DNA of 63,941 nt, the filler included, from Klebsormidium nitens (Eukaryota > Plantae > Klebsormidiophyceae), in NCBI GenBank assembly GCA_000708835.1. It is 10 parts of 10 records of this genome, joined end to end, with 100 filler letters (N's around TTAATTAATTAA, not from the genome) between each part and the next. Parts side by side here need not be neighbours in the genome. Positions count along the whole stretch, not along the records: positions 1 to 20,117 come from DF237923.1; 9 more parts are not named here. The stretch is one strand, 5' to 3'. Positions 2,085 through 20,117 of this stretch are shown in pieces. Both the position numbers and the translations under genes were made by a program. Position 1 is the first letter of the stretch. Each line of letters begins with the position of its first letter. The notes beneath the pieces are model-generated. The model was given only the letters and a program-made list of their open reading frames with translations. It did no database searches and was not told the DNA's origin.

Positions 2085-2689
2085 AATGTTAAAAGCCCGC
2101 ATAAAAAGCTGTTTGGGTTCGGTTACTTGTGAAGGTGAGACGACGGACTGCAAACGATCCTTTGAATTGGCATATAGAGCGGTCTTCAGCGGCCCCATTC
2201 CGGCTAGATAATTCGTGCCAGTTGTGAACACTGAAAGACAAACTTTACTCAACAAGAAACTTGCCTCTATGCTTCTAGTCCAATCGACTCCTTTTGCAAA
2301 CAACCGTTAATCAGTCGCCAGAATTGACTGTGTCATCATCGGACTTCACGCACCCCGACAACGATGATGGCTCACAACAAAAGCTTGTAAGAGGGGTAAA
2401 TGCAGTCTGAATAGCGATGGCATTTCTGAAGTTCTGATCGCATGCAACAAGCACCACCGATGCAGATCTGAAGAAGCTCAATTGAAGAAGCTACGACGTC
2501 GTGTGGCGAGGACACGTTGCCAAACTGATTGAAAACTTGTTTCAAAGACACACGCAAGACTTTGAACACCCATATCAGAAAAGCTACGTGTAAGGAGCTT
2601 CCATGAGAGTTGTATGGGAATCATGAGGTCGGAATAATATGATGCAATGAGGATGCTGAACCTACGTCACTTCACCTCTACCGCCGTGC

Positions 2690-2753
2690 TAATCTTGACC
2701 ACAGGGGAGATTTTAAGTTTTCCGCTCCCTCCCACTGGGTTTCCGTTCTGCGA
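2690..2753 (+). repeat. Left terminal inverted repeat
   Basis: taatcttgaccacaggggagattttaagttttccg, followed after a short insert by tttccgttctgcga (2740-2753). Confidence 0.85.
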
Positions 2754-2778
2754 TCTGAAGCAATGGTCTGCAACCAGA

Positions 2779-3200
2779 CCGACCGACCGCCGGACCGCAC
2801 CATTTGGCAGCCTCCGAGCAGCCGGATCAGGCGGACCGACCGAACGCCGGACCGCACCGTTTGCCAGCCTCCGAGCAGCCGGACCAGGTGGACCGACCGA
2901 CCGCCGGACCGCACCCCTGGCTTCTCATGACAGTCGGACCAGGCGGACCGACCGACCGCCGGACCGCACCGTTTGGCAGCCTCCGAGCAGCCGGACCAGG
3001 CGGACCGACCTACTGCCGGACCGCACCCCTTACTTCTGAAGGGCAGCCGGACCAGGCGGACCGACCGACCGCCGGACCGCACCCCTGGCTCTTCCTGACA
3101 GCCGGACCAGGCGGACCGACCGACAGCCAGACCGCACCGTTGCTTCCTATGGGCAGCCGGACCAGGCTGGCGGACCGACCGACCGCCGGACCGCACCCCT
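2779..3200 (+). repeat. GC-rich minisatellite, 55-57 bp unit, about 7.5 copies
   Basis: Unit core gaccgaccgaccgccggaccgcacc...cggaccaggcg with a variable middle; it explains the repetitive ORFs at 2647-3211. Confidence 0.95.
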
Positions 3201-3548
3201 GATGGCAGCAAAACTATATACGGCAGTAAACTAAGGGCGGCTATAGAAGGGAACTAGGCAAACGGGACGGAACGATCCCGACAGACGTTTTTGAATATAG
3301 TCTCCAATCCGCTTTAAAGATAATGAGACGCCGACAGCCGCCGAAAGCTGATCGCAGTATCGTTGTAGCATGCGGTTCACCGTGATGTTTCGGAGCACAA
3401 CAGGACATGCACGACAATAACGTACGGCAAATTCTGATTATTGACGCTCATCTTTACCCCAGCTAGCCATGGAGTACGGCCTCTTGCAATCAGATCGGGA
3501 CGATTCCGTAAGTTGTGGGTAAGGTACGTACTACTAACCAAATAAACT

Positions 3549-4637
3549 GACACTGTCTTGATCAGAATCCATACAATCAATCATGCCCGCGTCGCCATCG
3601 TTCACTTTAAGTGCCCACTGGCGCAAAAGCATCAAAGCATTCTCCTTTTTTTAGTGTCTCGGCCCCGCCAAATAGGTGTAAAGCACACTCAAACACCTGA
3701 AGTCATCGGAGGCATGACTCTGACAGTGGTTATGGGCTGTGGTTAGGACAGTGACAGTGACGCTGACAAGTGACACTGACATTGACATTGACAGTGACTG
3801 GGGCTCTCACTGGGATATTAGGGTTATGTTGCAAACCTGTAACGGGTCCTGGCAATCGACCAGCGTTTTGTTAGGGCTACGTCATTTCCCAGTGACATTA
3901 GGGTTACTCACTGACAGTGACAACCGGGCAGAGTACTTTTGGTTTAGTGTATGTAGCCACTTCCTCTAACCCGGTCCCCCCGGAGGCCGTACCGCAAATT
4001 GTACGGTAAATCTGACAACTCTGACGGAGTTTTGATCAAAGGACCTAATCTGACACTTTAATCCATGCGTACACCTTGAAAGCCAATGATCCCGCGTGTG
4101 AAATATTTTCACACTTTTTGAAGTCTGAGATACTAATAGAAGGAGAATGCTTCGTCGTACTTGCCCCACTGGCTGCATGTCTCCTTAAACCGACCTGCCT
4201 ATGGAAGTCACGGATGCGCCAACCATGTTGCTCGAATTCACGTGGTGTATATTGTATTAGCGTACGGCACACCTATAGTCGTTCTGCACTCTAAGTATAG
4301 TAACGGTCCCGCAACACTCATTCTTGAGCTAACCAATAAAGCGTGGATTGCACTTCTACAAAGCTGCTCAGCACGTTCTCAAAATACACTAGCTGACTGC
4401 GCATGCCACATCCCAGTCTATCTAATTTCGCTCCTAGATCGACATGTATGCTTTCACCCAACCGATGCACTTAACACTTGACAAATAGGCCTGTTGCAAA
4501 GTCTACTTCATGACTTCCCTAGATGCATCTGCCTCGTCCGACGCTGACAATGCTATCCAAGTCGAAGCCACTGCAGCTCCCATCCACATTTTGACCATAG
4601 CAAGAAGAGTCACCGTCACGAACCTACACTACCACCA
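3549..4637 (+). repeat. Copy 1 of a ~550-bp duplicated unit, interrupted by a MITE
   Basis: 3549-3622 matches 4881-4955, and 4166-4637 matches 4947-5427. Confidence 0.9.
3623..4164. mobile_element. Mutator-like MITE (542 bp) with a 9-bp TSD
   Basis: ~38-bp imperfect TIRs (gcaa...aagcattctcctt...ttagt.tctc) and G...C termini. TSD cccactggc at 3614-3622 and 4165-4173. The paralogous copy has an empty site (gccactggc at ~4946). Confidence 0.85.
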
Positions 4638-4880
4638 TGTGACGTTTGGGCTATGGTTAAGTCTAACCGCTCAAACCCACAGAGTTAAGTAACGCTCGCC
4701 CGTGCGACGCGTGATGATCTAAGTCCACTGTCCAGTAGTGACACGTGGCAATAGTCGAAGTAATGTTCGATAATTATTATCATTGGACATGTCGACAGTA
4801 GTATAAGTAGAGCTACTAGAGAAGCATGTACTCTCGCATGAACCAGGATTGCTTGGCANNNNNNNNNNNNNNNNNNNNTT

Positions 4881-5427
4881 GACACCGTCTTGATCAGAAT
4901 CTATACAATCAATCCTGCCCGCGTCACCACCGTTCACTTTAAGTGGCCACTGGCTGCATGGTTCCTTAGTTCCTTAAATCGACCTGCCTATGGAAGTCAC
5001 GGATGCGCCAACCATGTTGCTCAGATTCACGTTGTGTGTATTATAGTAGCGTACGACACACCTTTAGTCGTTCTGCCTTCCAAGTGTATTGACGGTCCCG
5101 CAATACTCATTCTTGAGCTAACCATAAAGCGTGGATTGCACTTCTGCAAACCTGCTCAGCACGTTCTCAAAATACACTAGCTGAATGCGCACGCCACATC
5201 CCAGTCTACCTAATCTCGCTCTAAAATCGACATGTATGCTTTCACCCAACCGATGCACTTAACACTTGACAAATAGGCCTGTTGCAAAGTCTACTTCATG
5301 AGTTCCCTAGATGCATCTGCCACGTCCGACGCCGACAACGCTCTATCCAAGTCGAAGCCGCTGTTGCTCCCATGCACTTTTTGACCATAGCAAGAAGAGT
5401 CACCGTCACGAACTTACACTACCACCA
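4881..5427 (+). repeat. Copy 2 of the duplicated unit (empty site)
   Basis: Continuous match to copy 1 without the MITE; begins just after a 20-N gap. Confidence 0.9.
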
Positions 5428-5469
5428 GACACATTTTGATTGATTGCTCAATCACAGACCGTACTCTAG

Positions 5470-8400
5470 TCATTTGCCACCCTTCGATCTCTTGGCCGGT
5501 GGCTCGGTACCCTCTTCCTGTACGGACTGCTGGTTCCGCTTCGTCGACCGCTGACTCTTCCGTAGGCCCGGGTCCTGGTGGCCGTTGGCAGTCTGAGGCG
5601 ACCGACCGTTGCCCGTGTCTGCAGCCGGTCCTGCCCCCGGTTCCTGGTTCTCGTTGCTCGGGCCCCGGTCCTGTGCCTCGCTCATCTCTTCGACATTTCC
5701 GGCGACATCATCGTTCCTGCGCAACAAGGCCAAAGTGGTTCCCCATCTCCGGCCAGCTTTGCAACACTGAGTAGCACTTGGGCTGCTCACCAAGAGCCCA
5801 ACGTCCCTGCCAACGACGCCAATCGATATCTAGAAACCGAAGACAGGCAAACAGACTACGATTCACGTCGACGTTCCCTCCTTGAGCTGGAAGCATGCAG
5901 AAAACCCTCGAAAATGATCGGCCAGGAAACAAACCCTGTTTCGTCTTCCCATCGTACATTCGAGGATATTGCCTGTTGTAAAAGTGTTCAGCGCTTCAAA
6001 CAAGTACGCGCAGCCGTCCCGTTTGAAGCCCCCACCTGTGAGCGCCCGGGCCTGAAGGAGGAGGCCGGCGGACACCACCAGGCCAGAACTCCTCGATGCC
6101 CAGATTGTTGCCAAAGCAGCGCTCAAGCGCCCCAATCAGCTTCTCCCTGTCCTCAGCGGACTCCGGGACCTTCTTGCAGAACACTGGTCCTCGTTCACGC
6201 ATCTGCTTGCTCGGTGGCGCGCCCGGATAGTCTGCATTGGCGGCCAGGTAGATTCTTCAAACTGATCGCGATTGTGCTGCTCTTCGAACGAGCAACCTCA
6301 AACCTCTTCTGATTTCGAACGAGCGATTCCAGACCTCTTATGGAGTCCAAAGGTATGATCACTTTGTTGCACTTTGAGGCAGGGCGTCTGAAGGTGGGTT
6401 CATGAGCGAAAAGAAACTGGTTAGACAGATAGGATCTTTCAGACCAAAAAGAGAGACAAATAGTGCAACGTAACGAACCCCGCCACTGATTTCAATGCAG
6501 TGAAAACGGAACAAGTAATGTCGGTTATTCCACCAGACTGCTCAAACTCACTTGGCACGACCTCGTGATCCTCGATGACGCGCCCGAAGACGCCCTCTTC
6601 GATGTTGACGACGTACTCCACGACTCGCCGCGTGTACTCGATTGGGGACAGGTCGCGGCCCAGATCAGCGCCGAGGTCCTTCCGCGCCTGGAGCTCCTCG
6701 CCGGATGCGAATGGGGTAGCCTTGTTGATCGTCGTGATGGGCAGCTTCTCAGCGGCAGCAAACTTCTTGAGCATCTTCACGGCGGATTTCGCCAGCGGTG
6801 GCTGCAAGAGGAACGACAACTGCAACGTGAGACAGATTGCTTGTTCGCAAAAGATTATTCCCACTCCGCTTATCTTTCAACGTGCCTTTGCGGTCTCCAT
6901 GCTCATTTCCTGGGCTCCTGCTTTTCATAGCGCCAATCTGCACGAGCATTGTCAACATCAGTGACAGCAACGTTAGGGCCGTTCCGAGTCCTTGAACGGC
7001 TTGGCCGTCCTTGCCGAGGCTGGTTGGGAGCTGATTCTTGAGTTTCTTACGCGCTAAGCCTTCCAAAAGCTATCGCTTCCGAGCGACGACATGGCACCAG
7101 GAACTGAAATCAGCCCGTGAAATTCCTGGACTACGATTCCATATACAATCACACCCACCAGCAGCCACGGCCATGCATGGTTCGCCCCGGGCTCGTTCAC
7201 TTCTTCCACGGCGCGGCCCTAATAGACGTCCAACAGCTCCTGCTCCCCCACGAACGTCATCTTTTGACGGTCGAACATGTCCATGACTCGCAGCGCCATC
7301 TCCACGCTCTTCTTCTGGATCACTGGATGGATGCGGACGGCGCCAGGATCGAGTCCAAGAGCGAGCGCCGTCTCCGAACTCGGCAAGGCCGTGGATGAGG
7401 GCCGAGAACATCATCAGCTTCCCGACGCCCTTCCCCAAGAGACCTGCAAGAGTGTCGGGGTGCACTTGTGAGGCCGTTTTCTGGCCCCTACCCTGTCACC
7501 TCATTTTATCACCGATTCCATCTTCCAAAAGAAGATCGTGTGCAAGCTCTGGCTACACAACGAGCTGTCCGGGTGAGCAGAATGGAGATGTCAACGACGG
7601 GTCTCACGAACTTTTGCAGGAACTCAAACCTTTTCGTCCGGCATGAATCAACAACCACGTAAAAATCACCAGAAGGCTTTGCACGTTGCTACAAACGCAA
7701 CCAGGACACTTAGCCAACGCCAGCGGACACCACTCTCCCAAGCATAGAACCTGTACGTGTGCACAGGGGCGCCTACAATGAGAGACCAACCGCTTTCAAT
7801 CTCAGTCGCTGTCGACCACAAGTCATGGATGCCAGTGATTGATCACTCAAACTGTTGCTCAACCCCATCTTCTCGCACAGCGTAGAAGCAGTGTTGAAGC
7901 GCCGGAACTGCTGGTCCAGCAGCACGAACGCGTCGTCACTCAGGGTGTAGAACGCCGTGATCGCCTGGCCCAGCGCTTCACTCCCTAGAATCTCCATCCT
8001 GTGGTGGCAGCTATAGATGTTGGACAGCACCTGCAAATAAGAGCACAACAAACGAGGTCAGATCGCTGCTTTCTGGGGTTGGGCGAATGATGTACATGCG
8101 AAAGAGGTAACAAATTAAGGTCTTAGTGCTTCACAGCAGACCTGCGGCGCCACACTGCTTTTTGCATGGTTGCTTTCATGCTCGAGAGCTCCATTCCAAT
8201 CCAAGAGCAGGTTATGCTCTGCTCAGAAGCACCTCACCAATACAAATTACAAAACTATGTTTTCACGAGGCACCGTCTTTTCATAAGAAAGATGCTGACA
8301 ATATTATTGGCCACAACGTCTCCAAGATCGAACACAGGTGACACTTTCCCATCACCGCACATGCCATCCGCAAAGACAACGGACACATGAACAACATTTT

Positions 8401-9996
8401 GAGAACGATTCCAAAGGAATCCTGAGAACAAACCACCTGTGATGCTTTGGGTTGAAACACCAAGGTGCTACATAAGAATTAATGATCAGCCTTGGGAGGG
8501 AGATGGCCATGCAGATCCCGACTAAACAAACACAAACCATTCACCACCACAACAGCCTCACATCAATCAGGTACTCCTTGGCTGCAAAGCGCACAGGCTC
8601 CTCTTCCTCGCCACCTTCGTCGCCCGCTGGCTGGGAGTCGCTCTCCGGTAGCCCTTGCCGCGCTTGCACCCATGCCAACTTCTCGGCCTCAGACCACTGA
8701 CCTGGCGCTCTTTCCGAGCTGCCATTCTCCGCTGATGACGACGGCCCTGTCGCTTCCGCATTTTGTGCCCGCATGCCACGCAACTGGGTGCCCGAGAAGA
8801 CAAGCTGCTCATCACTGACTGGCCTAGCAGGGACTTCGGGGCCGCGGTTTACAGCTTTCCGTCTTGGCAGCGTCTCAGTGCGCAGCTCAGAAAGACTCTC
8901 GACCTGCAGCCTGCGCGGCGCCGTCATCTCAAACCGTCCAGACAGTCCCATCGCTACGTTTGCTCATTTGTGAGGAAACTGAGCGCGATATCTGGCTGGA
9001 TGCCTCCGCAGAGTGCCACGGCTGTGCGCTTCAGGACGTGCTGCGGCTCCATTTCATTGCTGCCTCTGACACCGTTCGGCCATCCCCCACCATCCTTCAT
9101 GTCGAGAAGAAGCGTGTGCTCCTGCTTGGACCCCGCCTTGGTGTGCAGATCTAAGTTTTCAATCTAAGCCCAATATCTGGCGCACAAAGAAACTTCTCGG
9201 GGTTCACACTCCGCGTCAGGTCGTCGTACAAGTGGTTCAAGGTCTTCTGCAGGGGCAGGACACACCATCGTCAGGATGCAAGAACAACCAACTCTTCAAT
9301 CACACAGCATGCCGAGCTGCATATAAGCAAGGCCAGCGCCAGCAGACATGAGTACCTACAGTCAGAGAGACCAAAACCACTGAACAAGACCTCCCAAATT
9401 TTTGCATTCTTATGATGTCATAGCTGCATCTACTTGCAAAAGAATCAAATCAGTGAAAGATTCTAAGATGACGACAACAGTTACCAGAATGTTGCCCCAA
9501 ACATTTCGAGCTCGCAGAAAGAATAGGATTCAAAACCTCCACAGGTCAGTAAGCTGGTTGACACTGCATCTGAGCACACTGAACGGCGTCGGGAGTTGTA
9601 AAAACTTGCGCTCGACCAAAAGAAGTTCAACTTCACGGCGTGCATCGTCTTTCCCTCAGCCCGCTCCTCGACCCCCTCCATGATCTCATTCAAAGCCTTG
9701 ATCAGCGGGCTCTTGTTTGTGCCACTTGGGGAAACAAGAATGTGCCAATGTCTCAAGACCTGCGTCCAATCGATCATCCGGTCGGCCAACGTCACTTCTG
9801 ACTTGTATCCAAAGCAGTGTGAGACCGCAGTCAGGAACATTCCAATCAGAGCAATGCCTGTTGAGCCCTTTGATCTGGCTACTGCTTCTACACACTCTCC
9901 AACCTTGGCAGGCAGCATCGATCTGACATCATCTGGGAGAAGGTCCCTGGCAGCCTCGAGGCGCTTCCCCAGTTCCTTTCCTTTGCGGATCGCCAT
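5470..9996 (-). pseudogene. Multi-exon DUF3987 (YfjI-like) P-loop ATPase gene, disrupted
   Basis: Exons encode LLPDDV..VEAVARSKG..IALIGMFLTAVSHCFG..WHILVSPSGTNKSP (Walker A-like), LLLDMKDGGG..AVALCGGIQP, FYTLSDDAFVLL, LGKGVGKLMMFSALIHGL and IQKKSVEMALRVMDMF. There is an in-frame TAG at 7219-7221 and a frameshift near 7370. The 3' exon boundaries are uncertain. Confidence 0.7.
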
Positions 9997-10478
9997 GCTC
10001 CTTGTATATGTGTAGCTTGGGTTACCAAAAGATCCTGAAAGCGTCTAAAGAGGAAACTTTTAAAAAACCCCCCCTCAACAAAAGCAAGTTGTACGACTGA
10101 GAAATGGCTCCCCAGCGCCTGCAAAAGCAACACTGGCAGCAGCAAGTCAATTGAGTTGCATCACATGACTTCTCAGATGTGTTGTCCCATTTCACGAGGC
10201 AAATGGGAAATTGGAGGTCAACAATCGCCCCGGTTGGCCGGCAGAATGAGGGGTTTTCCTAGGCCACCAAAGCCCGGTTGGCCTCAACAAAAGTACCGGT
10301 ACCAGCAAGGCAAGCGGTACCGGCCAAACGCGTATGGTGCAGGCTGCGATACCGGGCAAGCGCGGATGGTGCGGCGGCTGCGGTACGTGCAAGCACGGAT
10401 CGTGCCGGGTACAGGCTGTGGTACCGGCTCTGACCGGTACAGTGCCTGGAGGCCACCCCACGTTCAGTTCGATCAAGA

Positions 10479-10665
10479 ATAATTCTCAAGAAAGAAAATA
10501 GTAAGCCAAGATAATAGTAAGCTCCGACTAACACTAAAAACCCTAACCTTAGAAGAAACACTCGCTCCGCACCCGTACCCACCCTAACCACCATACTAAC
10601 CCTACCCGTCACAGTGCGGTTACCTTACTATTATCTGGGCTTACTATTATTTTCCTTGAGTTTCA
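10479..10665. mobile_element. Small foldback/MITE-like element with a 10-bp direct-repeat flank
   Basis: ~43-bp imperfect inverted arms (ctcaag..aatagtaagcc.agataatagtaag). tcgatcaaga flanks it at 10469-10478 and 10666-10675. Confidence 0.7.
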
Positions 10666-10999
10666 TCGATCAAGATATACCCTACGACCAGCCAAAGGAT
10701 ACCAACATATGTTCCATGCGCGTCTGCCTCAACCAGCCCAGGCCACATGCCGGTTATCTGAGGAAAAAATGGCTAGGCCGTTATACAAAACAGTCTCGTG
10801 AGTCGGGATAAGTTTCAATATAATCCAAGAAAAGGGTGTTTTAAACCGGATGTAAGACCCTCAAACCCTAAGCAAGCGTTTCGATTGAACCCTAAAACAT
10901 TCAATGATACTCACAAACCATGACGAACCACAAAAGCTTGCAAACCCCAAGTACAAGTTGGCAGCTAACTCCCAGTCATGGTTACAGCTAACATCTATT

Positions 11000-11299
11000 G
11001 CCTGACCCACACTGAAACCCTAAGGGCAAAAAGCAACATGCTCCGCACCCCAACCCACCCTAACCCCCATTCCAACCCCACCCGTCCCAGTAACAAGTCG
11101 GTTGCAACTGGCATATGGCCTGACCCACACTGAAACCCTAAAGGTACAAAGCAACATGCTCCGCACCCCAACCCACCCTAACCCCCCATACCAACCCCAC
11201 CCGTCCCAGTAACGGGTCGGTTGCAGCTGCATATATGGCCTGCATGATTGACACTGAAACCCTAAAGGCACAGATTAACATGCTTCGCACCCCAACCCA
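11000..11299 (+). repeat. Tandem repeat, ~120-bp unit, 2.5-3 copies, C-rich strand
   Basis: The unit gcctgacccacactgaaaccctaa...ctccgcaccccaacccaccctaacccc...ccgtcccagtaac is repeated. Confidence 0.9.
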
Positions 11300-11771
11300 A
11301 GGACGGGGCGGTTGCGTTTGCGTACCCAAGTCATGCAGCATATGCTTATACACACTAATATGAATAATGAACGTGAAGGCGGCAAGCAACAAGCTCCGCA
11401 CATGTGCACCAATCATTTAACCAACCCATATTTCCATCCATCCATCATCCTTTGCCGAAGTCATTCTTTCAAAATGATTGCAAAGTCACTTTGCATGCTA
11501 TGTATTCTATTTCCAGTCATATTATGATAGGTTTGTATGCAAGTTTGTTACATTCAACGGCACCGTTTTTAAGGGGAACTGCACAGTCTAGCGCAGTATT
11601 AGCTGGGATCGTCTAGAGGATTCCGCCAGAATCAAAGACCTGTTCAACACGATACAAGGGCCGGACGCACAATATCACCTCAACCTACAAGCAGGCCTCT
11701 ACTACTACCGGTGGGCCACAACGCACTAGTCACACTATATTTGCTCCAGGTGCTACAAATATTAGCACAAC

Positions 11772-14700
11772 TCACAAAGCTATCCGCGTGACTGCGCGCC
11801 CATAACGAGCCGTGCTCGCTACAATCGTGGGACCTTCGAATTGCCCGCGTTCAGTATGCTGCACTTCTGCTTCTGACTTGGGAGCGGCACCACCACCGGC
11901 GGTTGGCAACAGGCCGTCCGACTGGACGTCCTCTCCGCTGCAGTAAAAAATGAATTTCATCGAGCCGATCATCAGACACCGTAACTTCCAGATTATGCAT
12001 GCTCGGGTCCAACAAGAGTGCGGAATACTGAACTGGACTTATTGGCAAACGTACAATCTTACAAGCCAGTAGAAAAGGAAAGTTCGACGAGTTGTAAAGA
12101 CAGAAAAGCAGATCGTGCTCGGCACCTGTTGATGTATTGGCCCACAATCAATTGCGAAACGACACAAGCGCAAGCGGATTACTAAACATACGCACCACGT
12201 CTCATCGTCGGTGTGCAGCTCCTCCTGCGTCCCCTCCTCCACAATCTGCTCGTTCACCGCCCCTATCCCTAGGTCACGCACCCCGAGCTCGCAGATCCGC
12301 CTGTACACCGCCTTGATGTCCCGGCTCCGGACATGACCCTCGCTGATCCACCGCGCAACTGCAACACACACGTCCACAAGGAGACGATTCAAACGAGTGT
12401 CGAACTCACAATATGGACAGCGCACGGAGGGGTTCGAAACATCGAACTACTCCCAACCCTCGTTCATTCCTAGACCTGTTGACAGGGCGACTCAAATCAA
12501 GTTCAGCGCCAGACTTCCATATATGGCGTCCCTTCAAAAGCTACGCCACACACTAGAATGCCAAATCACCTAGTATAACCTACCTGAGCCCCACTCCCCG
12601 ACCACGGACGGATCCTTCGCATACTGTTTCAAACACCCCGGTACCACGCCCTCCTCCTCCGTCCAACGTGAGTGCTGCATCGCCCGCAGTCTATACCCAA
12701 GCTGCAGTAGGTCGGAGAGACCGACACGCGCGGGGAACACACCCTTCATCACCAGCATGTAGTCGCAGCGCACCGCCAGACCACCTACACAAGGTGAGAG
12801 TCGAATCTCAAGAGCATCCCTTGAAATTGACGTACTGCGTGCTTTGATGTTTCATAACGAGCAACTGCCCCCGATTTCCGTAAAAAGTTCCTGGGTGTGC
12901 CGATCCTGGGATGCATACATTTGCAACCCATTAGACCATCTCCAAGAAACGTACGCATGCAAGTATCCCACCTTGTGAGGCCCTCTTCAACAGCTCCCGC
13001 GTGGCTTGGCGAAGACTGGTCGCGAGGGCCACCAGCGCACGGTCCCCGTGGGAGTACTTCGTCCCCCAATGCCCGACCAACTGCGCCAGGATGCCGCTGT
13101 TCACCGCTATGGCCACCGTGTCTAGTCGCGCCTGCGCAAGGTGTATGAAACTTTGTTTCAGAAACTACCACCACGCTGCCGACCTTCCCATCCCAGCGTT
13201 GCAGTCATCCTGAGACTTTGAAACAAGAACCCCTGACATCAACGTAAGCATTGACAGGACTGGAAGAAGCATGCGCCGTACCTGTGCAAGCTCGAAGGAT
13301 TTCCAGCCCTTCCCAGCATCCTTGGAATTGATCACCGAGTGGAGCGACTCGTTTGCGATTGTATCGCGAAAGAATCTGAACAATTTCTGATTCGCCAACA
13401 AGGCGTTGAGGACCAGCGGTTCGGCGAAGTTTTTGAATGCGTGATCGATCTCCCTGCAAAAGGAATCGTTCCAACAAGGATCAAATCCTCCTTCACAAAT
13501 CCACACTGCTAGAACAACACGCACTTTGTAAACTCGAGCCAACAAGAGGGAGGCAGGGGACGAGGACGCAACACTTCTCGCACACGGAGAAACTGTCCGC
13601 AGTCTGCTCTATACAGATTTCTCTGAGTAACGATCTTACATGCGGTCGCAGATGCCCCGTGCTGCGTTGGCCATTGCCTCGGCAGCCCCCATCACACGGC
13701 GCGAGGAGGAAGCCGAAAGCGGCGGCTCCGGCCGAAGCTGCTCCCCACTGTAGAGAACCCCGAGCCGCGCCGCGACGCTCTGGAAGGCAGTCGATGAAGA
13801 AGCGCGGGCCTGCACAGGGAACGAGACAAGCTCGATAGAAATAGGGAGAAATCCGGGCTTGCAGTCCGGGCAGGGTCTCGAGAAAGGAACTGGCGTGCGT
13901 GACTTTTACACAGCTGTACAAGCCGTCATTTTGTACTTACCTTAGAGTAGAAGGCGAGCACCGCCGCCACGTTGTAAACGAGGTCGGCCTGGCAGCTGTA
14001 GCCAACGACGGGGTAGTACGCATCCACGTCGCTTGGCTTGAGACGCAACTTCACGCACAAGCGGCGGAGGGTTGCGAGAGCGCAGCGCTGCACGGTGCTA
14101 GGAGAGAAGCGGCTCCGCAGCTGGACACCGTCCGGGAGGACATGATCTTGTAGGCAAAGCCGCTGTCCACATTCAACAGGAGTGACCAATCGATGCCTTT
14201 CCAACATCGAAACACAGGGGGCTTGCAGCAATGAAAGACGCACTAAACCCCAAAATCAACTTACAACAAGGCCCTCACCCCTACCGACAGAGGTGTGCGA
14301 ACAGCGCTCACGTGCATGAACAGTTGCCCAACAAAGACTCACCCATGCGGTGCTGACCTCCATACGTCCGCTGTGGATGAGGGCCGTCGAGAACCGTAAC
14401 TGAAAGCAAGAAGAGAAAGGTTGGTGAATCAGGTTTCGCAGGCAAACCCAAAAAAAGGCCACTCTGATCAGGTCGGCCTCGCACCAACAATTAGCGACAA
14501 CGAGGTTTCGAACAGGTCTGAGTAATTGTTTCCTTCAAAGAGCGCCTTCAAAGAGCGCTGAAGAACAGACACGTGTCGCTCCTACCTCGGAAGTGTGCAG
14601 GCTCTCGCCCTGGAAGGCCCGCTCCAGTACGGCCGCAATTTCAACAGGGCTCCGGCACGTCGAGGGAGCCTCGACCACAACGTTCTCGGGGGAGAGAGGC

Positions 14701-17700
14701 CGAAGGTCGGAGTCCCCCAGGGTTGGGCGGGGGCTGGCGGACGTGGGGTCCGGCCGGGAGAGACGACCGCTGAAGCACAGCTCCAAGTCGTACTTTACAG
14801 CCGAGTAGTCCCCATGGCCCTTCTCAAGCTTCCGCGAGAACGCCCACTCGCGATGCTTGATAATCTGCAGGGAGTGCTGGTCAGGCAACCCTTTAGAAAC
14901 GGATTTTGCTGGACAGCTTGGCCACGTGTACAACGGCAAAGTTGCGGGCCCGTGCCAAAGTTTAACCAGGCTTCCGAAATATATCGAGCTAGGCATCCAC
15001 ATCAAAGCAGATCCGAGACTAGAAAACGGTTCAACACAACCAATTGCGAATAGAGCTACTCAGTCAAGTACTTTGAACGGGGAAGCGCAGGGCTGAGCAG
15101 AACGAGACCGTTGAAAATCGAAATTCGAGCAAGAAACGGTTAGCCGATGCGACCACGCACCTCGGCGACAACAAAGTCCGCCTCGGAGATAGTGGGGAAA
15201 ATCTCCTTAAGCAACCGGCGGATGAAAACGTGGTCCCGCTTGATGGAGTCAGTGACCAGCAGGGGCGGTGGTGCGCTAGGTCCCTGCGTCTCCGCGCGGT
15301 ACCGCAGGACCTTGGTAATCTGCAGATGCACTCATAGCTTAAATCGAGTTTTCTTTTAAAGGTTCACGTGCAGCATGCGTACTTGCAGACATCAACACTC
15401 GTCTGGGTGACCGAAACGTTTTGGGAATGCTCTGGAAAACCGACTCAAGGCTCTGGATATAAGACCATAGCTCACCACGCTCTCAAGCGCCTGATGGCTC
15501 CCGTGAGGCACCAGAATGGGCGACTCGAGCGCCAGCCCAGCAGCGCCTGCAATGACCCGAAAGTGACAGTGAAAAACCATAATAAAACACCTTTGGGACT
15601 TGTAAGATGTTGCAGGGCTTGCAGCCAACGTACCAGACGCCTCACATGAGACGCAATTGTAGGTAAGAAAACCAAATGTCACAATCATTGGCCGGAGAGC
15701 GAACGCACGTACCTGTGACGGTAACGAACGCAGCGGGAACCGAGCTGACTGCGCCATGGTTGCACACGATCGCCCCTTCCGCAGTCGTCTCCTCCACAAC
15801 GGCCCCGTCCAGCTTGATCATGACCCCATTAGCTGCCGTATAAGAAACATCCCACGCCACCTTTTGTGTGCAAAGCAGTCAAGGAAGAGACGGTTTGGAA
15901 GCGGATGCAACCAAGACCACAAGAGCGCAGTGAAGAGATATATGCAGGCAAAGGGGAGTGTGCCGTTGGAGGATATCCGTCATAGGAGACAATCTCCTTG
16001 TAGTAGTTGGCCAGGTTGGGGCGGACGAGCTTCTCGTGCCAGAGAAGAAACATGTTGGTCACTGTCTCAGTTGATGGCAGCATACGATTGAGCGCGTCCA
16101 GCAGGCGGTCATCGTTGGGGGCAAATGAGGTCAATGCCTCCCTCATGATAACCTGGAAGCCAATGAACGCTGCAATGAGCTGCAAGACAAGACATTCGCA
16201 GCAATCTCGGACCGGCACAGACCAGATGTGGAGAGCACGAAGGGGCTTGCAGAGGTGCGTGCACGACAGATGCAGAAAAGGGCCAGAAAAGGGCCAGCCA
16301 CAACAACGTCAGGTTGTCACCTCTTGTAGAGCCTAAAGCTGGTTCACGGACCAGAGCTGAAATAGGTTCCTGATAGCCTGGGATCAAAGATGACAAAACA
16401 AAGCTTCAGCGCGCGGGCTCACAATACCATGGACCACAAGCTTTCCTGTATTTAACATTGGGAATTGCCATCTAACACATTGGACGTCACTCACACACCT
16501 TGATTCAATCGCACAAGCACAGTCAGTCCTCTAGATACCTGCCGCCACTGAACTTGCATCAACACCGCACTGGTCATTGAAGTCCTGGGCACAGGGGCCT
16601 GAGGACTCACGGCTTGCACATTCTAGTTGTCGCAAATATGTTGTCGCAGCAGCATGGCGGCAGCTTCACTGAAGTACACATCGCCCACGGGAAGAAGGTT
16701 CGGGCGGTAAGTTGTGCCAGGGGGACGGTCGGTGCGTGCCAGAGCTGGATGGTCACACGTGAATCGGGACGCCTTGCCTGCATGCAAGATACCAGGCAAC
16801 TCAAAATCACACTGCAAACGTGAGGACCAGTACACTTTGCACAATCTGACAGCAGTAGCAAGTTAGCATGACAATATGGACCCTCAAGCAGAAGCAACGC
16901 AATACCAAGACAATTCGAGACTGAGGACAGTTCTGTTACCAGTTGCATAGCAGCTGTACTCATCGACCTTCAACCTCTTGGGACGGTCGACATCGATCGG
17001 ATAGCGCTCTAAACAGCGTACGCCGGAACTGGACAGCGCAAGCAACACCAGGGTGCTCCTCAAAGCGAGGGCAGCGCGCTGGTATATAGCGCTGCCCATC
17101 CACTCCAACCAGCTGCAAGTGCACGACAGGAAGCAGCATGGGGGATGCAGCTCGCTGTAGGGGCATGAGCTCTGTCCCGGCAGATGGCGTGTGCTGCGCC
17201 ATGCTTTCGACGAGTTCATCAACAAGGGACCGCGCCTGCAAAATGAAGGTGACACTTAAGATTTCGCAGATATGTGTTTTGCAGGTGGTGAGAAGTTGTG
17301 AAGAAGAAAGATCAGCATTTCACAGCCGCAACACGCAACCAGAAACGAGCCAAAACAGTCGATTGATCGATATTCACACAAGAGAGAAACTCCAGGCCAA
17401 CGAATCTGGCAAGCACGCAAGCATATAATACATCGGACGGCATTCAAGAGCAGAGTTCCCAATGCAGCACCTTCGCTGCAGCGGTATCCCGCATGTCGCC
17501 CTCCCGCTCCAGAGCCGCCAGCTCGTCTTCAGAGCGCAGGCGGTAGACGCCGCCAGACAGCTCAAAGAGTTGACCCCATTCGTCGATGCACGACAGTGGC
17601 TGGATGTCGATGGCTTCAGAAGACAGCTCCCACAACGCCGGCAAGGGTGCGTCCGCCCGAAGGCCCCTGTCATAGAAGCGGCGGTCATTGATAGGCACCA

Positions 17701-19495
17701 AGTCATGGACCTTGAGAGCAGGCTCGTCGGTCTCGCGCTCTTGAGCCTCTTGGAGAGATGCAGGGCCGCAGCAGAGCGCGTTGAAGGGGGGGCCGTCAGC
17801 AGCGAGCATCCAAACGAAGTAGCCAGAGGGAGGGATCGTGGCAGCAGCGACAGATTCCTCGAAACGCCGGTAGAAGTTGGGAACATGCCGGAAGTTGCTG
17901 CAAGCAGCAACACGCATGTTTATCAACCAGTGAATCAATGAAAGCTACGCCCATAACAGACAGGTAGACGAACAGCAGAGCAGATCAAAGAGGAAACCGC
18001 AGTTGTTCAGCGCTTGTTGAGCTGCAGTCGCTACAAGCGAACAGGGGAACAATGCAGCTTTGCGTGTCTCACCATTGAACAGAGCGCATCGCCGCGCAAC
18101 CGGGATCTGGCGACCAAGCTTGGCGCGCGCGCGCAGAAGCGAAGCAGGGTCCAAAGCTGCAGGAACCTGTCAAAAGACTTTGAAATCAGCAGCAGCAGTT
18201 GGTTTTGAAACCTTTTGCCAATCCTCACTCGCAACAGTCATCCCTGCTTCTGACAAGAATGTAGAACTCGTTCACATACGAGAGGGACTGCAATCCTCAT
18301 GAACCATTGTGAACATTGTTTGCTAGGGACCAGGCCTTGAAACTGCTTACAGGCGCCGGCGCATTAGGCTCTTCTTGTGAAAGTTTGTTGTACTATAGCT
18401 GTTTTGCTGATGCCACACCCGGTGCTAACGTCTTAGTGTTGTGGTTGTCATCCCTCTTGGTAAGAGCTTTGAAAGTCTCTTGAACATGGGCCTCTGCAGA
18501 AACAAGAGCACAAATGACAAATCGCTTTTGTCCAAAGAACCCCAACACACACAACAATCAGAGCCAGTTGAAGGCAAATCCCAACCCTTGCATAAGCTAG
18601 CACCCCTTTAATCAGCAGAAACTCCTGTTTTCAAACATGAGAGCCCCAATTATCCTGACGAATTAGAACATTCCAGATCGCGCGCTTACCTGCGCGCTGT
18701 GCTTCCTGTTTGTGCGAGTTAAGATGACCAGACAGTTTATCTTTCTTTGCGACGCCAAATCCACAGCGAGAAGCGGTGCAGTGCCAGTGCTTTTTTATAG
18801 TAGTGCCGTCCGTCTTAGCAAACTTGCAGCCAGCATAGCTGCAGCTTCCCTCTTTGCGAGTGAGAATGTACCCGTCTGCAGAAATAACTTTCAACAAAAC
18901 TCAGAACCCGAGCACAGCAATCTGATGCATATGTTAACCGACCGACAGCGTATCTGATACATCTGAAGCTAGCAAATGCAGGATTTGACTTCAGAAAGAG
19001 AACGCGAGGATATAAGGACGTAAGCTCACCGATAAAGTCCTTTTCACACACTGCCCCATGTGACTTTGCATTAGAGATCCTTTCAGATTGATGCTGATTG
19101 CAGACTAAGCAATGAAAGTGACGCTTGCTGGAGATGTATGACCCCAGTATGCAGAATTTGCAGCCCCCAACTGTGCATGGCTGCCCCGCTTCTACAACAC
19201 GCCAATTTTCTTTGAAGATCTTGTCCCTCGCAGCTAGAGCTTTGCTGACCACATTGGCTGCTGATCAAGGGGACGATGCCTTATGTTTAGTCACGTCCGT
19301 GTCAAATGCCGCATTGCCATCAGCAGAGATATGCTTACTCAGATTGACCGGCATCACAGGGTCAACATTCTCCTTCCCAGCGGTTTCTACAGGGACCTTT
19401 TTGCGAGAGGGCATGTCTATGTTAAAACAGTGGCCACCATCCTGCTCGAGTCCCTCAGAAGCACGCTTCTTTCCTAGGCTACTGGCCGCAGCCAT
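11772..19495 (-). pseudogene. Intron-rich DDE-type transposase (Dada/DUF6729-like) with N-terminal Castor-type zinc fingers, frameshifted
   Basis: Exons: C..GGCKF...HFHCLVC...H and C.YAGCKF...HWHCTASRCGF...HLNSH (ZnF), RCP...SSGV...IDVD (DUF6729-like), IVSYDG (D1, ~15980), RYRAETQGPSAPPPLLVTDS (D2, ~15249), IIKHREW..L.K.H.DY (~14860) and RDTIANESLHSVIN (E, ~13349). GT-AG introns flank these blocks; frameshift near 17040. Confidence 0.65.
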
Positions 19496-19885
19496 TTCAT
19501 TTAGGCTTCTACGAGATTGTGCTTCCCTTAAAGGCAGATTCTGAAGATGAGACGCGTCTGCTTTATCATCATCTCAAAAGGCCTCTCACAAGGTTCCCAA
19601 CTTTTCCACCACTAGGTCTAGTAGCTCACTTGGAGACAAGTTGCAGCTGACAACGGATGCAGCTCAAGAAGCCAGCAGAAAAGCATGACCAATGCAACCA
19701 ATGCAGTGCAATGCAGCTGGTAAATGCAACGTTCTATCCATGTAGAGAACAACTGGTTGAGCGTTCTGCTGCTTCTGCATCCGTTTCCAAGTTCTGCCGC
19801 ATGCACTCGAGCTGCAGTCTGCAGCGTTCAGTCTGGCTGGCGCGGTTCCGCACGATTACACGCGACCGAAGGCCGGAATCCGCGT

Positions 19886-19927
19886 TCGCAGACCGGAAAC
19901 TTAAAATTTCCTCTGTGGTCAAGATTA
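19886..19927 (-). repeat. Right terminal inverted repeat
   Basis: The reverse complement is taatcttgaccacagaggaaattttaagtttccggtctgcga: 15 bp identical to the left end, then 2 mismatches and 1 indel. Confidence 0.85.
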
Positions 19928-20117
19928 CCGGGCCCCTACATTGGCGGCTGAGCGGAGAGACTCCGAGGAAGGCGGGCGCAACGCAAGCGAGCCGGAGAAA
20001 GGAGAAGAGAGCGGAAAAAGCGGGCAATTGGAGGAGGAGGAGGCGGACGGCGAGGAAGGATTGGAAGACTACGATTCCGAAAATAACGCCGGGTCGGTGG
20101 ATGTGACTGTTAGAAGT

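Follow-up and report, generated by a model that had tools for sequence, protein, structure and literature searches.

Positions 1-20,117 of a 63,941-nucleotide stretch of DNA (the window) were analysed; they make up all of scaffold DF237923.1 of the Klebsormidium nitens NIES-2285 assembly GCA_000708835.1, and the annotated protein KFL_009740040 (P0001) aligns to them exon by exon. This scaffold is nearly all taken up by a transposon of 16-17 kb, in which a pair of inverted repeats encloses two genes, one encoding a DDE transposase (gene 1) and the other a DUF3987-like P-loop protein (gene 2). The element represents an undescribed DNA transposon family with a rare, distantly Dada-like transposase, upholding the original prediction of a large DNA transposon new to description; no mention of DUF6729, of a eukaryotic DUF3987 transposon or of this Klebsormidium element was found in the literature. 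Positions 2690-19927 are likely to form a single, low-copy cut-and-paste DNA transposon of K. nitens, probably an autonomous one. Three features typical of cut-and-paste (class II) elements were identified, namely inverted repeats around a transposase gene, a pairing of repeat and transposase that recurs in a distant relative, and presence in several copies. The two genes are co-oriented and intron-rich, as predicted; both were found on the minus strand with spliceosomal introns, and these two spliced eukaryotic genes and repeats account for the element interior with nothing left over. Among models for the algal ancestry of land plants, Klebsormidium is a key one; a low-copy transposon that is intact and transcribed in this genus would, if confirmed, offer a candidate tagging tool.

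The scaffold carries four annotated gene models, all on the minus strand. The main features of the locus are as follows:

2684-2689: candidate target-site duplication, left, CCGTGC.
2690-2720, plus strand: left inverted repeat, TAATCTTGACCACAGGGGAGATTTTAAGTTT, continuing to about 2725 with one gap and weakly to about 2765.
2777-3197: subterminal minisatellite with a period of 57 bp and 7.4 copies, core GGACCGACCGACCGCCGGACCGCACC.
5470-9996, minus strand: gene 2, the DUF3987-like P-loop protein gene, with a 3' untranslated region on to about 3392; annotated as two pieces, KFL_009740030 (P0008, 123 amino acids (aa)) at 9237-9996 and a fourth model of 476 aa at 5470-8951.
11772-19495, minus strand: gene 1, the DDE transposase, with at least 22 exons; annotated as KFL_009740040 (P0001, 658 aa) at 11772-16053 and KFL_009740050 (P0010, 229 aa) at 16109-18364, with exons at 18634-19495 unannotated.
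19897-19927, minus strand: right inverted repeat, about 400 bp upstream of the transposase start codon.
19928-19933: candidate target-site duplication, right, CCGGGC; the bordering sequence 19928-19947 is conserved in the flank of a distant relative, the metagenome contig L004.

The arms of the inverted repeat are 31 nucleotides (nt) long, match at 29 of 31 positions (94% complementary), and face inward across 17,176 nt; among other repeats of such length in the scaffold, none was found to exceed 76%. The 15-mer core TAATCTTGACCACAG has just two occurrences in the scaffold, one on each strand and both at the arms, even with two mismatches allowed; the chance expectation is 0.05 matches, and two matches were seen in none of 100 shuffles. 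The match between the arms reaches about 36 nt with one 1-nt gap, with a weaker continuation to about 76 nt, and a further motif, TTCCGKTCTGCGA, is present once per end in inverted orientation (2741 on the plus strand, 19886 on the minus strand). An inverted repeat this far beyond chance supports the transposon reading. The perfect 15-bp core, the longer imperfect inward-facing repeats and the TA at the start of each arm had all been predicted and were all recovered.

Contigs (k=31) of a DNA run, X1, which is likely to be the source sample, were compared with the left end. The contig of the flank stops at 2717, as would be expected if the sequence common to other copies of the element begins at about 2688-2690. 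Several X1 contigs share the left arm and then diverge, with joints at 2712, 2718 and 2724. Some of these skip the minisatellite wholly or partly (2712 or 2718 to 2775, and 2724 to 3171), and such joints are length variants or contig collapse; the predicted subterminal minisatellite itself was confirmed.

The transposase encoded by gene 1 was found to carry its catalytic D, D and E residues in conserved blocks. Its principal positions, all on the minus strand, are:

18634-19264: two zinc-finger-like N-terminal exons rich in Cys and His, with a weak match to the OrsD C2H2-type domain (E 0.004).
15849-15851: first catalytic D, in KVAWDVSY; Asn in the decayed L004 copy.
15248-15250: second catalytic D, in PPPLLVTDSIK; kept in L004.
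14853-14864: position of the C/DxxH signature, IIKH in the window and DISH in L004.
13348-13350: catalytic E, in RDTIANESLHSVIN.

The E motif, RGTxxNE[SAT]xHSVxN, is invariant among the known family members (6/6). The Cys/His-rich N-terminal exons are kept in L004 (49% identity over 43 aa) and probably serve in DNA binding; four Cys residues are likewise shared with L004 in blocks 17169-17026 and 16778-16626. A CxxC was identified at about 12410, in an open reading frame (ORF) outside the annotated exon, and no C-terminal CCHC finger was recognised in the transposase.

Relatives of this protein are scarce. Pfam scans of about 60 ORF pieces from both strands, and of P0001, P0008 and P0010, gave no transposase match (no MULE, DUF6729 or hAT), a PDB sequence search with the transposase returned noise only, and searches of NCBIfam and PHROGs gave nothing useful. 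Using phmmer, the exon at 13168-13608 was compared with 1.84 billion representative proteins, and the seven matches obtained were P0001, five short metagenome or Logan fragments and one spurious low-complexity repeat protein. Word-indexed protein searches recovered solely the K. nitens proteins themselves and P0009, a protein of a Logan assembly, and no relatives were found in two metagenome-contig scans (of a collection apparently without L004) or in one viral-contig scan. An ESM Atlas model of P0001 had as its neighbours, over alignments of 250-296 residues, eukaryotic DUF6729 proteins, MULE and Mutator proteins and the IS256, IS66 and ISL3 transposases of bacteria.

The most informative relative is L004, a 12,990-bp Joint Genome Institute (JGI) contig from metagenome 3300060284. 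Comparison using tblastx (window 19147 to 12585 against L004 2591 to 10179) showed about 22 collinear coding blocks separated by unconserved introns, amounting to about 950 aa at a mean identity of 48%. Within these conserved blocks the window copy has no stops. L004 has stops in at least four of them, a frameshift in the exon carrying the second D, and Asn in place of the first catalytic D, and is thus a decayed copy. A terminus homologous to that of the window, TAATCCGCTCCACAGGGGAAA, occurs once in L004, at position 1583 and about 460 bp upstream of the transposase ORF; it too has the TA, and the pattern TAATC....CCACAGGGGAAA is carried once, in the orientation and at the distance upstream of the transposase seen for the right arm of the window. 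By our own arithmetic, the chance expectation for this terminal pattern is about 0.006 per 13 kb. Retention of this terminal sequence despite a gene identity of only 48% shows that the terminus moves with the transposase, in the way that would be expected of a transposase and its binding site. No second repeat arm was found within 11.4 kb of L004, indicating that its element is also large. Similarity extends beyond the repeat, with 12 of the 14 bases outside it being identical (ATGTAGGGGCCCGG in the window and ATGTAAGGGACCGG in L004), which may mean either that the true end lies slightly further out or that insertion is sequence-selective. A distant transposase fragment was also seen at L006:3-1019, on a contig from the same metagenome; an Integrase_H2C2 domain (E 5e-18) lies 7.7 kb upstream on that contig, and this integrase zinc-binding domain of long terminal repeat (LTR) retrotransposons is probably part of an unrelated neighbouring element.

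With regard to the target site, the hexamers CCGTGC and CCGGGC adjoin the arms and match at 5 of 6 positions in the one copy examined. Alternative 7-mers, CCTCTAC (2675-2681) and CCCCTAC (19933-19939), match at 6 of 7 positions and lie 8 and 5 nt further out, and L004 has CCGGT and CCCTTAC at the same offsets. From these flanks the duplication is most likely 6 bp, a length that would fit the transposase class better than TA. The TA target duplication of the original prediction was not confirmed; TA makes up the first two bases of both arms, is part of the L004 terminus as well, and is for that reason uninformative. A 9-bp duplication was rejected (the best 9-mer match between the flanks being 6/9), and no 8-bp or TTAA duplication was found at the ends. 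A small-RNA gene target was likewise rejected, with no tRNA or Rfam family being detected by Rfam and ARAGORN in the window flanks, the reconstructed empty site or the L004 flank.

A mechanism can be proposed for the element in which the N-terminal zinc-finger exons would bind the repeats of about 31-36 bp together with the subterminal repeats (the TTCCGKTCTGCGA motif and the 57-bp minisatellite), and an RNase H-type DDE centre would excise the element. Reinsertion would then take place with a short staggered cut, most likely of 6 bp (CCGKGC). Insertion would probably be sequence-selective, because the flank adjoining the repeat is conserved in a relative as distant as L004; if this reflects true target specificity, the element would add a second kind to the sequence-targeted DNA transposons of eukaryotes.

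Regarding superfamily, the transposase probably belongs to the C/DxxH group of DDE enzymes (MuDR, hAT, P, Kolobok and Dada), with Dada tentatively the nearest candidate, as a distant relation rather than a proven member. The Dada superfamily, described by Kojima and Jurka in 2013 (PMC3706591) and including Dada-1_CV of the green alga Chlorella variabilis, is characterised by Cys-rich fingers (N-terminal CCCC and C-terminal CCHC), 6-7 bp duplications, absence of terminal inverted repeats and insertion into small RNA genes. The motifs compare as follows (Dada motifs from PMC3706591):

First D: MDSTKKV or CDHTFATA in Dada; AWDVSYTA in the K. nitens family.
Second D: PPQLLYVD in Dada; PPPLLVTD in the K. 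nitens family.
DxxH: RLDxxH in Dada; QDISH in L004 and QIIKH in the window.
E: RGTSKVESLHS in Dada; RGTLTNESSHS in the K. nitens family.

The order and rough spacing of these motifs agree (xxxDxS/TY/F, PPxLLYVD, LDxxH and RGTSxVESxHS in Dada against AWDVSYTA, PPPLLVTD, QDISH and RGTLxNESxHSV), with a DxxH-position signature about 30-35 aa past the second D (QDISH of L004 being about 35 aa past it). Further points shared with Dada are a transposase of more than 1,000 aa with a DDE triad and a Cys-rich N-terminal region, encoded by an intron-rich gene; an element length of several kb and more; a candidate 6-bp duplication within the 6-7 bp range; a conserved flank suggestive of sequence-specific insertion; and eukaryotic DUF6729 proteins as the nearest language-model and ESM-structure neighbours. 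Using hhalign, the E-exon alignment of the family gave P 0.0022 against Dada-tY_PMar, this best result spanning 19 columns, whereas Dada-U6_DR gave P 0.16; the register was as expected in each case. In an ungapped motif test the E motif alone landed where expected. The earlier description of the transposase as Dada-like is weakly supported by motif resemblance, this alignment and the language-model neighbours, and no significant similarity to Dada was found at the level of hidden Markov models (HMMs) or BLAST.

The element also differs from Dada in several respects. Dada repeats are 7-9 bp and subterminal, whereas those described here are 31-36 bp and lie at the ends or within 8 nt of them; true ends lying 5-8 nt outside these positions would make the repeats subterminal, yet their length would remain well above 7-9 bp. 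Dada elements target tRNA, small nuclear RNA or 5S genes, none of which is present at the reconstructed site or in the flanks, and the spacing from the second D to E is about 280 aa compared to 176 aa in Dada. The C-terminal CCHC finger of Dada was not recognised here, and no Dada element has been described with a second gene. The element combines Dada-like catalytic motifs with long inverted repeats. Its transposase family, next to absent from databases of billions of proteins, extends the MuDR/hAT/P/Kolobok/Dada group by one branch.

Resemblance to MuDR/MULE elements and IS256 is seen in the C/DxxH-group DDE centre, in an E motif of the (T)xxxES type and in their presence among the language-model and ESM-structure neighbours of the transposase; terminal inverted repeats and zinc-finger DNA-binding regions are further points in common, and MuDR/MULE elements frequently capture extra genes. 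In contrast, no Pfam match to MULE, Transposase_mut, DBD_Tnp_Mut or SWIM was obtained with any exon, P0001 or P0010, there is no 9-10 bp duplication, and MULE repeats are typically much longer than the 31-36 bp found here. In the E motif, MULE transposases have Asn (ESxN) where the K. nitens element has His. No hallmark of the hAT, P and Kolobok superfamilies was seen, with neither a hAT dimerisation nor a THAP domain found in the Pfam scans and no 8-bp or TTAA duplication.

To judge from its first exon, gene 2 goes back to a DUF3987-type P-loop protein; it is an old derivative and carries introns. This exon (9996-9631) aligned with Pfam DUF3987 (PF13148) at profile positions 8-74 of 364, with E values from 7e-4 to 9e-5 and scores of 19.3-22.2 bits, below the gathering cut-off of 27. 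Language-model features for DUF3987 gave a score of 0.93 with 189-193 shared features, and 79 of the 100 nearest clusters were in the DUF3987 set, all of them bacterial or phage; distant homology of the first exon to DUF3987 is likely. The following feature lies in this exon:

9709-9732, minus strand: Walker A-like loop SPSGTNKS, with Asn in place of the Gly before Lys.

The P0009 protein is 76% identical to this N-terminal exon and has an identical SPSGTNKS loop. Run SRR23617210, of which L008 and L009 are Logan contigs, was observed to hold both a relative of the transposase E exon (L008, 40% identity) and P0009, on separate short contigs. The likeness to DUF3987 (Escherichia coli YfjI-type) is confined to positions 8-74, P-loop included, with the remaining 290 profile positions undetectable, and no later exon of gene 2 matched Pfam or PHROGs. 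DUF3987 is the helicase-like part of phage and plasmid primase-helicases, whereas gene 2 is a eukaryotic gene with at least five spliceosomal introns and lacks the partner domains primase, PriCT and Toprim. The predicted DUF3987 ATPase/helicase was thus borne out as to the resemblance of the first exon, but not beyond a sub-threshold match with an altered Walker A loop, and a role of the protein as an ATPase, helicase or transposition partner is conjecture.

Splicing of gene 2 was evident from contigs of RNA runs (among them X5 and X9), in which five GT..AG introns absent from the DNA contigs were removed:

8031-8561, minus strand: intron.
7444-7790, minus strand: intron (alternative 7444-7846).
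6802-7158, minus strand: intron.
6232-6551, minus strand: intron.
5717-6035, minus strand: intron.

A single frame is open through all RNA-supported exons except 7159-7443, which is 285 nt long (a multiple of 3) and has three in-frame stops; one long ORF would return if this exon were skipped or trimmed. Abundant intron-retaining and alternative forms were observed among the RNA contigs, along with the alternative donor at 7846 rather than 7790. Reading frames differ between the ORFs 9163-8957 and 8963-8562, whose overlap falls at an A-run, and a similar break lies at about 9165. These apparent 1-nt frame breaks (8966-8970 and about 9165-9170) both fall in short A-runs, and may be homopolymer assembly errors rather than mutations.

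Gene 2 is best taken as cargo or an accessory of the transposon. It is possible, but rather doubtful, that the element is instead, as the original prediction had it, a two-component transposon with the DUF3987-like protein as a required partner, either a target-selecting or regulatory nucleoside triphosphatase (NTPase) in the manner of MuB, TnsC and IstB or a helicase for a replicative step. In favour of this, gene 2 is enclosed by the repeats and shares its strand with the transposase, it is spliced, well covered by RNA contigs and transcribed from at least two copies, its N-terminal exon appears constrained in view of P0009 with its identical P-loop, and the DUF3987 resemblance is seen both by Pfam and in language-model features. 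The layout, a DDE gene followed by a same-strand P-loop-type gene within one repeat pair, recalls Mu (MuA/MuB), Tn7 (TnsB/TnsC) and IS21 (IstA/IstB), but this is an analogy of layout, with no homology detected to MuB, TnsC or IstB and a degenerate P-loop here. AcademH and other helicase-carrying cut-and-paste elements are likewise large, with an extra gene resembling a nucleic-acid enzyme; AcademH differs from the K. nitens element in having a different transposase family and a superfamily 2 (SF2)-type helicase. Counting against a required partner are Pfam scores that all fall below the cut-off and cover a small part of the profile, later exons that match nothing, a Walker A sequence (SGTNKS) without its conserved Gly, the stops and two frame breaks described above, the lack of relatives in the viral and metagenome scans, and L004, in which no DUF3987-like gene was found in the 2.8 kb downstream of the transposase. 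A functional role as partner would make the element the first eukaryotic equivalent of bacterial transposase-plus-NTPase systems. A bolder form of this proposal is unlikely, namely a two-protein machine in which a rare Dada-related transposase acts with an intron-bearing DUF3987 descendant that, by analogy with MuB, TnsC and IstB, would license the target (CCGGKC then CCYTACAT), the whole forming an undescribed superfamily-level lineage confined to streptophyte algae.

The element is transcribed and is present in more than one copy. In RNA runs from six studies, word coverage came to 31-44% for 2300-6800 and 51-64% for 11700-19650, and DNA runs contained 100% of the sampled words of 11700-19650. 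For the stretch 6018-6392, X1 has an identical version and a version with 25 substitutions and 11 gap letters, at similar depth. This second version of gene 2, in which about 7-10% of aligned positions differ, was found both as DNA and as spliced RNA, with an RNA contig spliced at the same intron.

Against the reading of the locus as a cut-and-paste transposon, possibly still mobile today, a number of points must be weighed. The candidate duplication is imperfect (5/6), and neither an empty site nor another complete copy with both its ends was recovered. The transposase has no Pfam or PDB sequence match, its family is almost absent from the databases, and an AlphaFold2 model of P0001 built on a shallow alignment was too poor to use (predicted local distance difference test (pLDDT) 44, predicted template modelling score (pTM) 0.29). 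Furthermore, the Asp of DxxH is Ile in the window copy, gene 2 could not be threaded as one open frame, and a single annotated copy with transcription that is high and steady is also what a domesticated gene would show. Another reading is that the locus is a domesticated or immobile relic, with genes that serve the host and repeats that are leftovers. This is improbable: the K. nitens proteome has one annotated copy per protein, transcription is steady in at least six RNA studies, and the Asp to Ile change and the extreme sparsity of the family would suit a relic, but the arms are still 94% identical, X1 has several versions of the left end and two of gene 2, the scaffold is a 20-kb orphan ending in repeats as expected for a repeated element, and the decay of L004 is typical of transposons and not of host genes.

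The continuity of the cut-and-paste element depends on a problem block near its left end, composed of the following:

3547-4878: problem block, with a diverged duplicate of 4880-5427, an insert resembling a miniature inverted-repeat transposable element (MITE), a high-copy repeat and an N gap.
3615-3660 and 4127-4172: inverted arms (46 nt, 76% complementary) of the MITE-like insert, which occupies 543 bp between the duplicate pieces.
4638-4858: high-copy repeat adjoining the N gap.
4859-4878: N gap.

The duplicate pieces are 92% identical (3548-3622 against 4880-4954) and 90-94% identical (4166-4637 against 4947-5427), and within the block contig depth climbs from about 14 to 190-1750. An X1 DNA contig of 2,853 nt was found to join 3169-3546 directly to 4879-5009 with no mismatches, and an RNA contig likewise links 3546 straight to 4879. 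As the DNA contig has the joint as well, it is not an intron, and no X1 contig followed the assembled path beyond 3546. The direct joint, together with the duplicate structure, shows that both sides of the gap belong to one element, so that the gap at 4859, where the original prediction had cautioned that a misjoin might lie, does not bring together unrelated DNA. The block 3547-4878 (1,332 bp) probably stems either from a paralogous copy, part of which was wrongly assembled here, or from a local duplication, and without this block the element would be about 15.9 kb rather than 17.2 kb. It is accordingly very unlikely that different loci were joined at the gap and that the arms and genes are not one unit. 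Such an artefact would explain a 90-94% copy of 4880-5427 at 3547-4858 with foreign repeats, ending in an N gap, and the want of X1 contigs along the assembled path; set against this are the DNA and RNA contigs across the joint, the complete recovery of sampled words of 11700-19650 in DNA runs, and the gap-free stretch 4879-20117, which holds both genes and the right arm. It is extremely improbable that the locus is an integrated element of viral or Polinton-like kind with a primase-helicase-type gene. DUF3987 domains do typify the primase-helicase modules of phages and plasmids, and the clusters closest by language model come from bacteria or phages; against this, the ORFs scanned yielded no domain for capsid, polymerase, integrase, primase or packaging functions, the viral contig scan was empty and two spliced eukaryotic genes and repeats fully explain the interior.

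In the DNA run, the MITE-like insert (3615-4172) has a contig depth of 190-380 and thus represents a repeated family in the K. nitens genome. The repeat 4638-4858 has a summed contig depth of about 1,500-1,750 in X1 and of 4,200-6,800 in X21, an unrelated DNA run with the same species label, and contig breaks are frequent at 4637/4638.

No protein families were detectable in the 2.7-kb left flank outside the element; its segments 640-721 and 1271-2085 hold a 40-nt near-palindrome (TACCGTAGGTACC...) and short inverted repeats. Within the element, one further tandem array was identified in the 1.7-kb intergenic spacer:

10996-11299: tandem repeat of 118 bp, 2.5 copies.

This array, together with positions 10572-10634 of the spacer, is rich in CCCTAA-like units (ACCCTAACCCC), giving it a telomere-repeat-like flavour.

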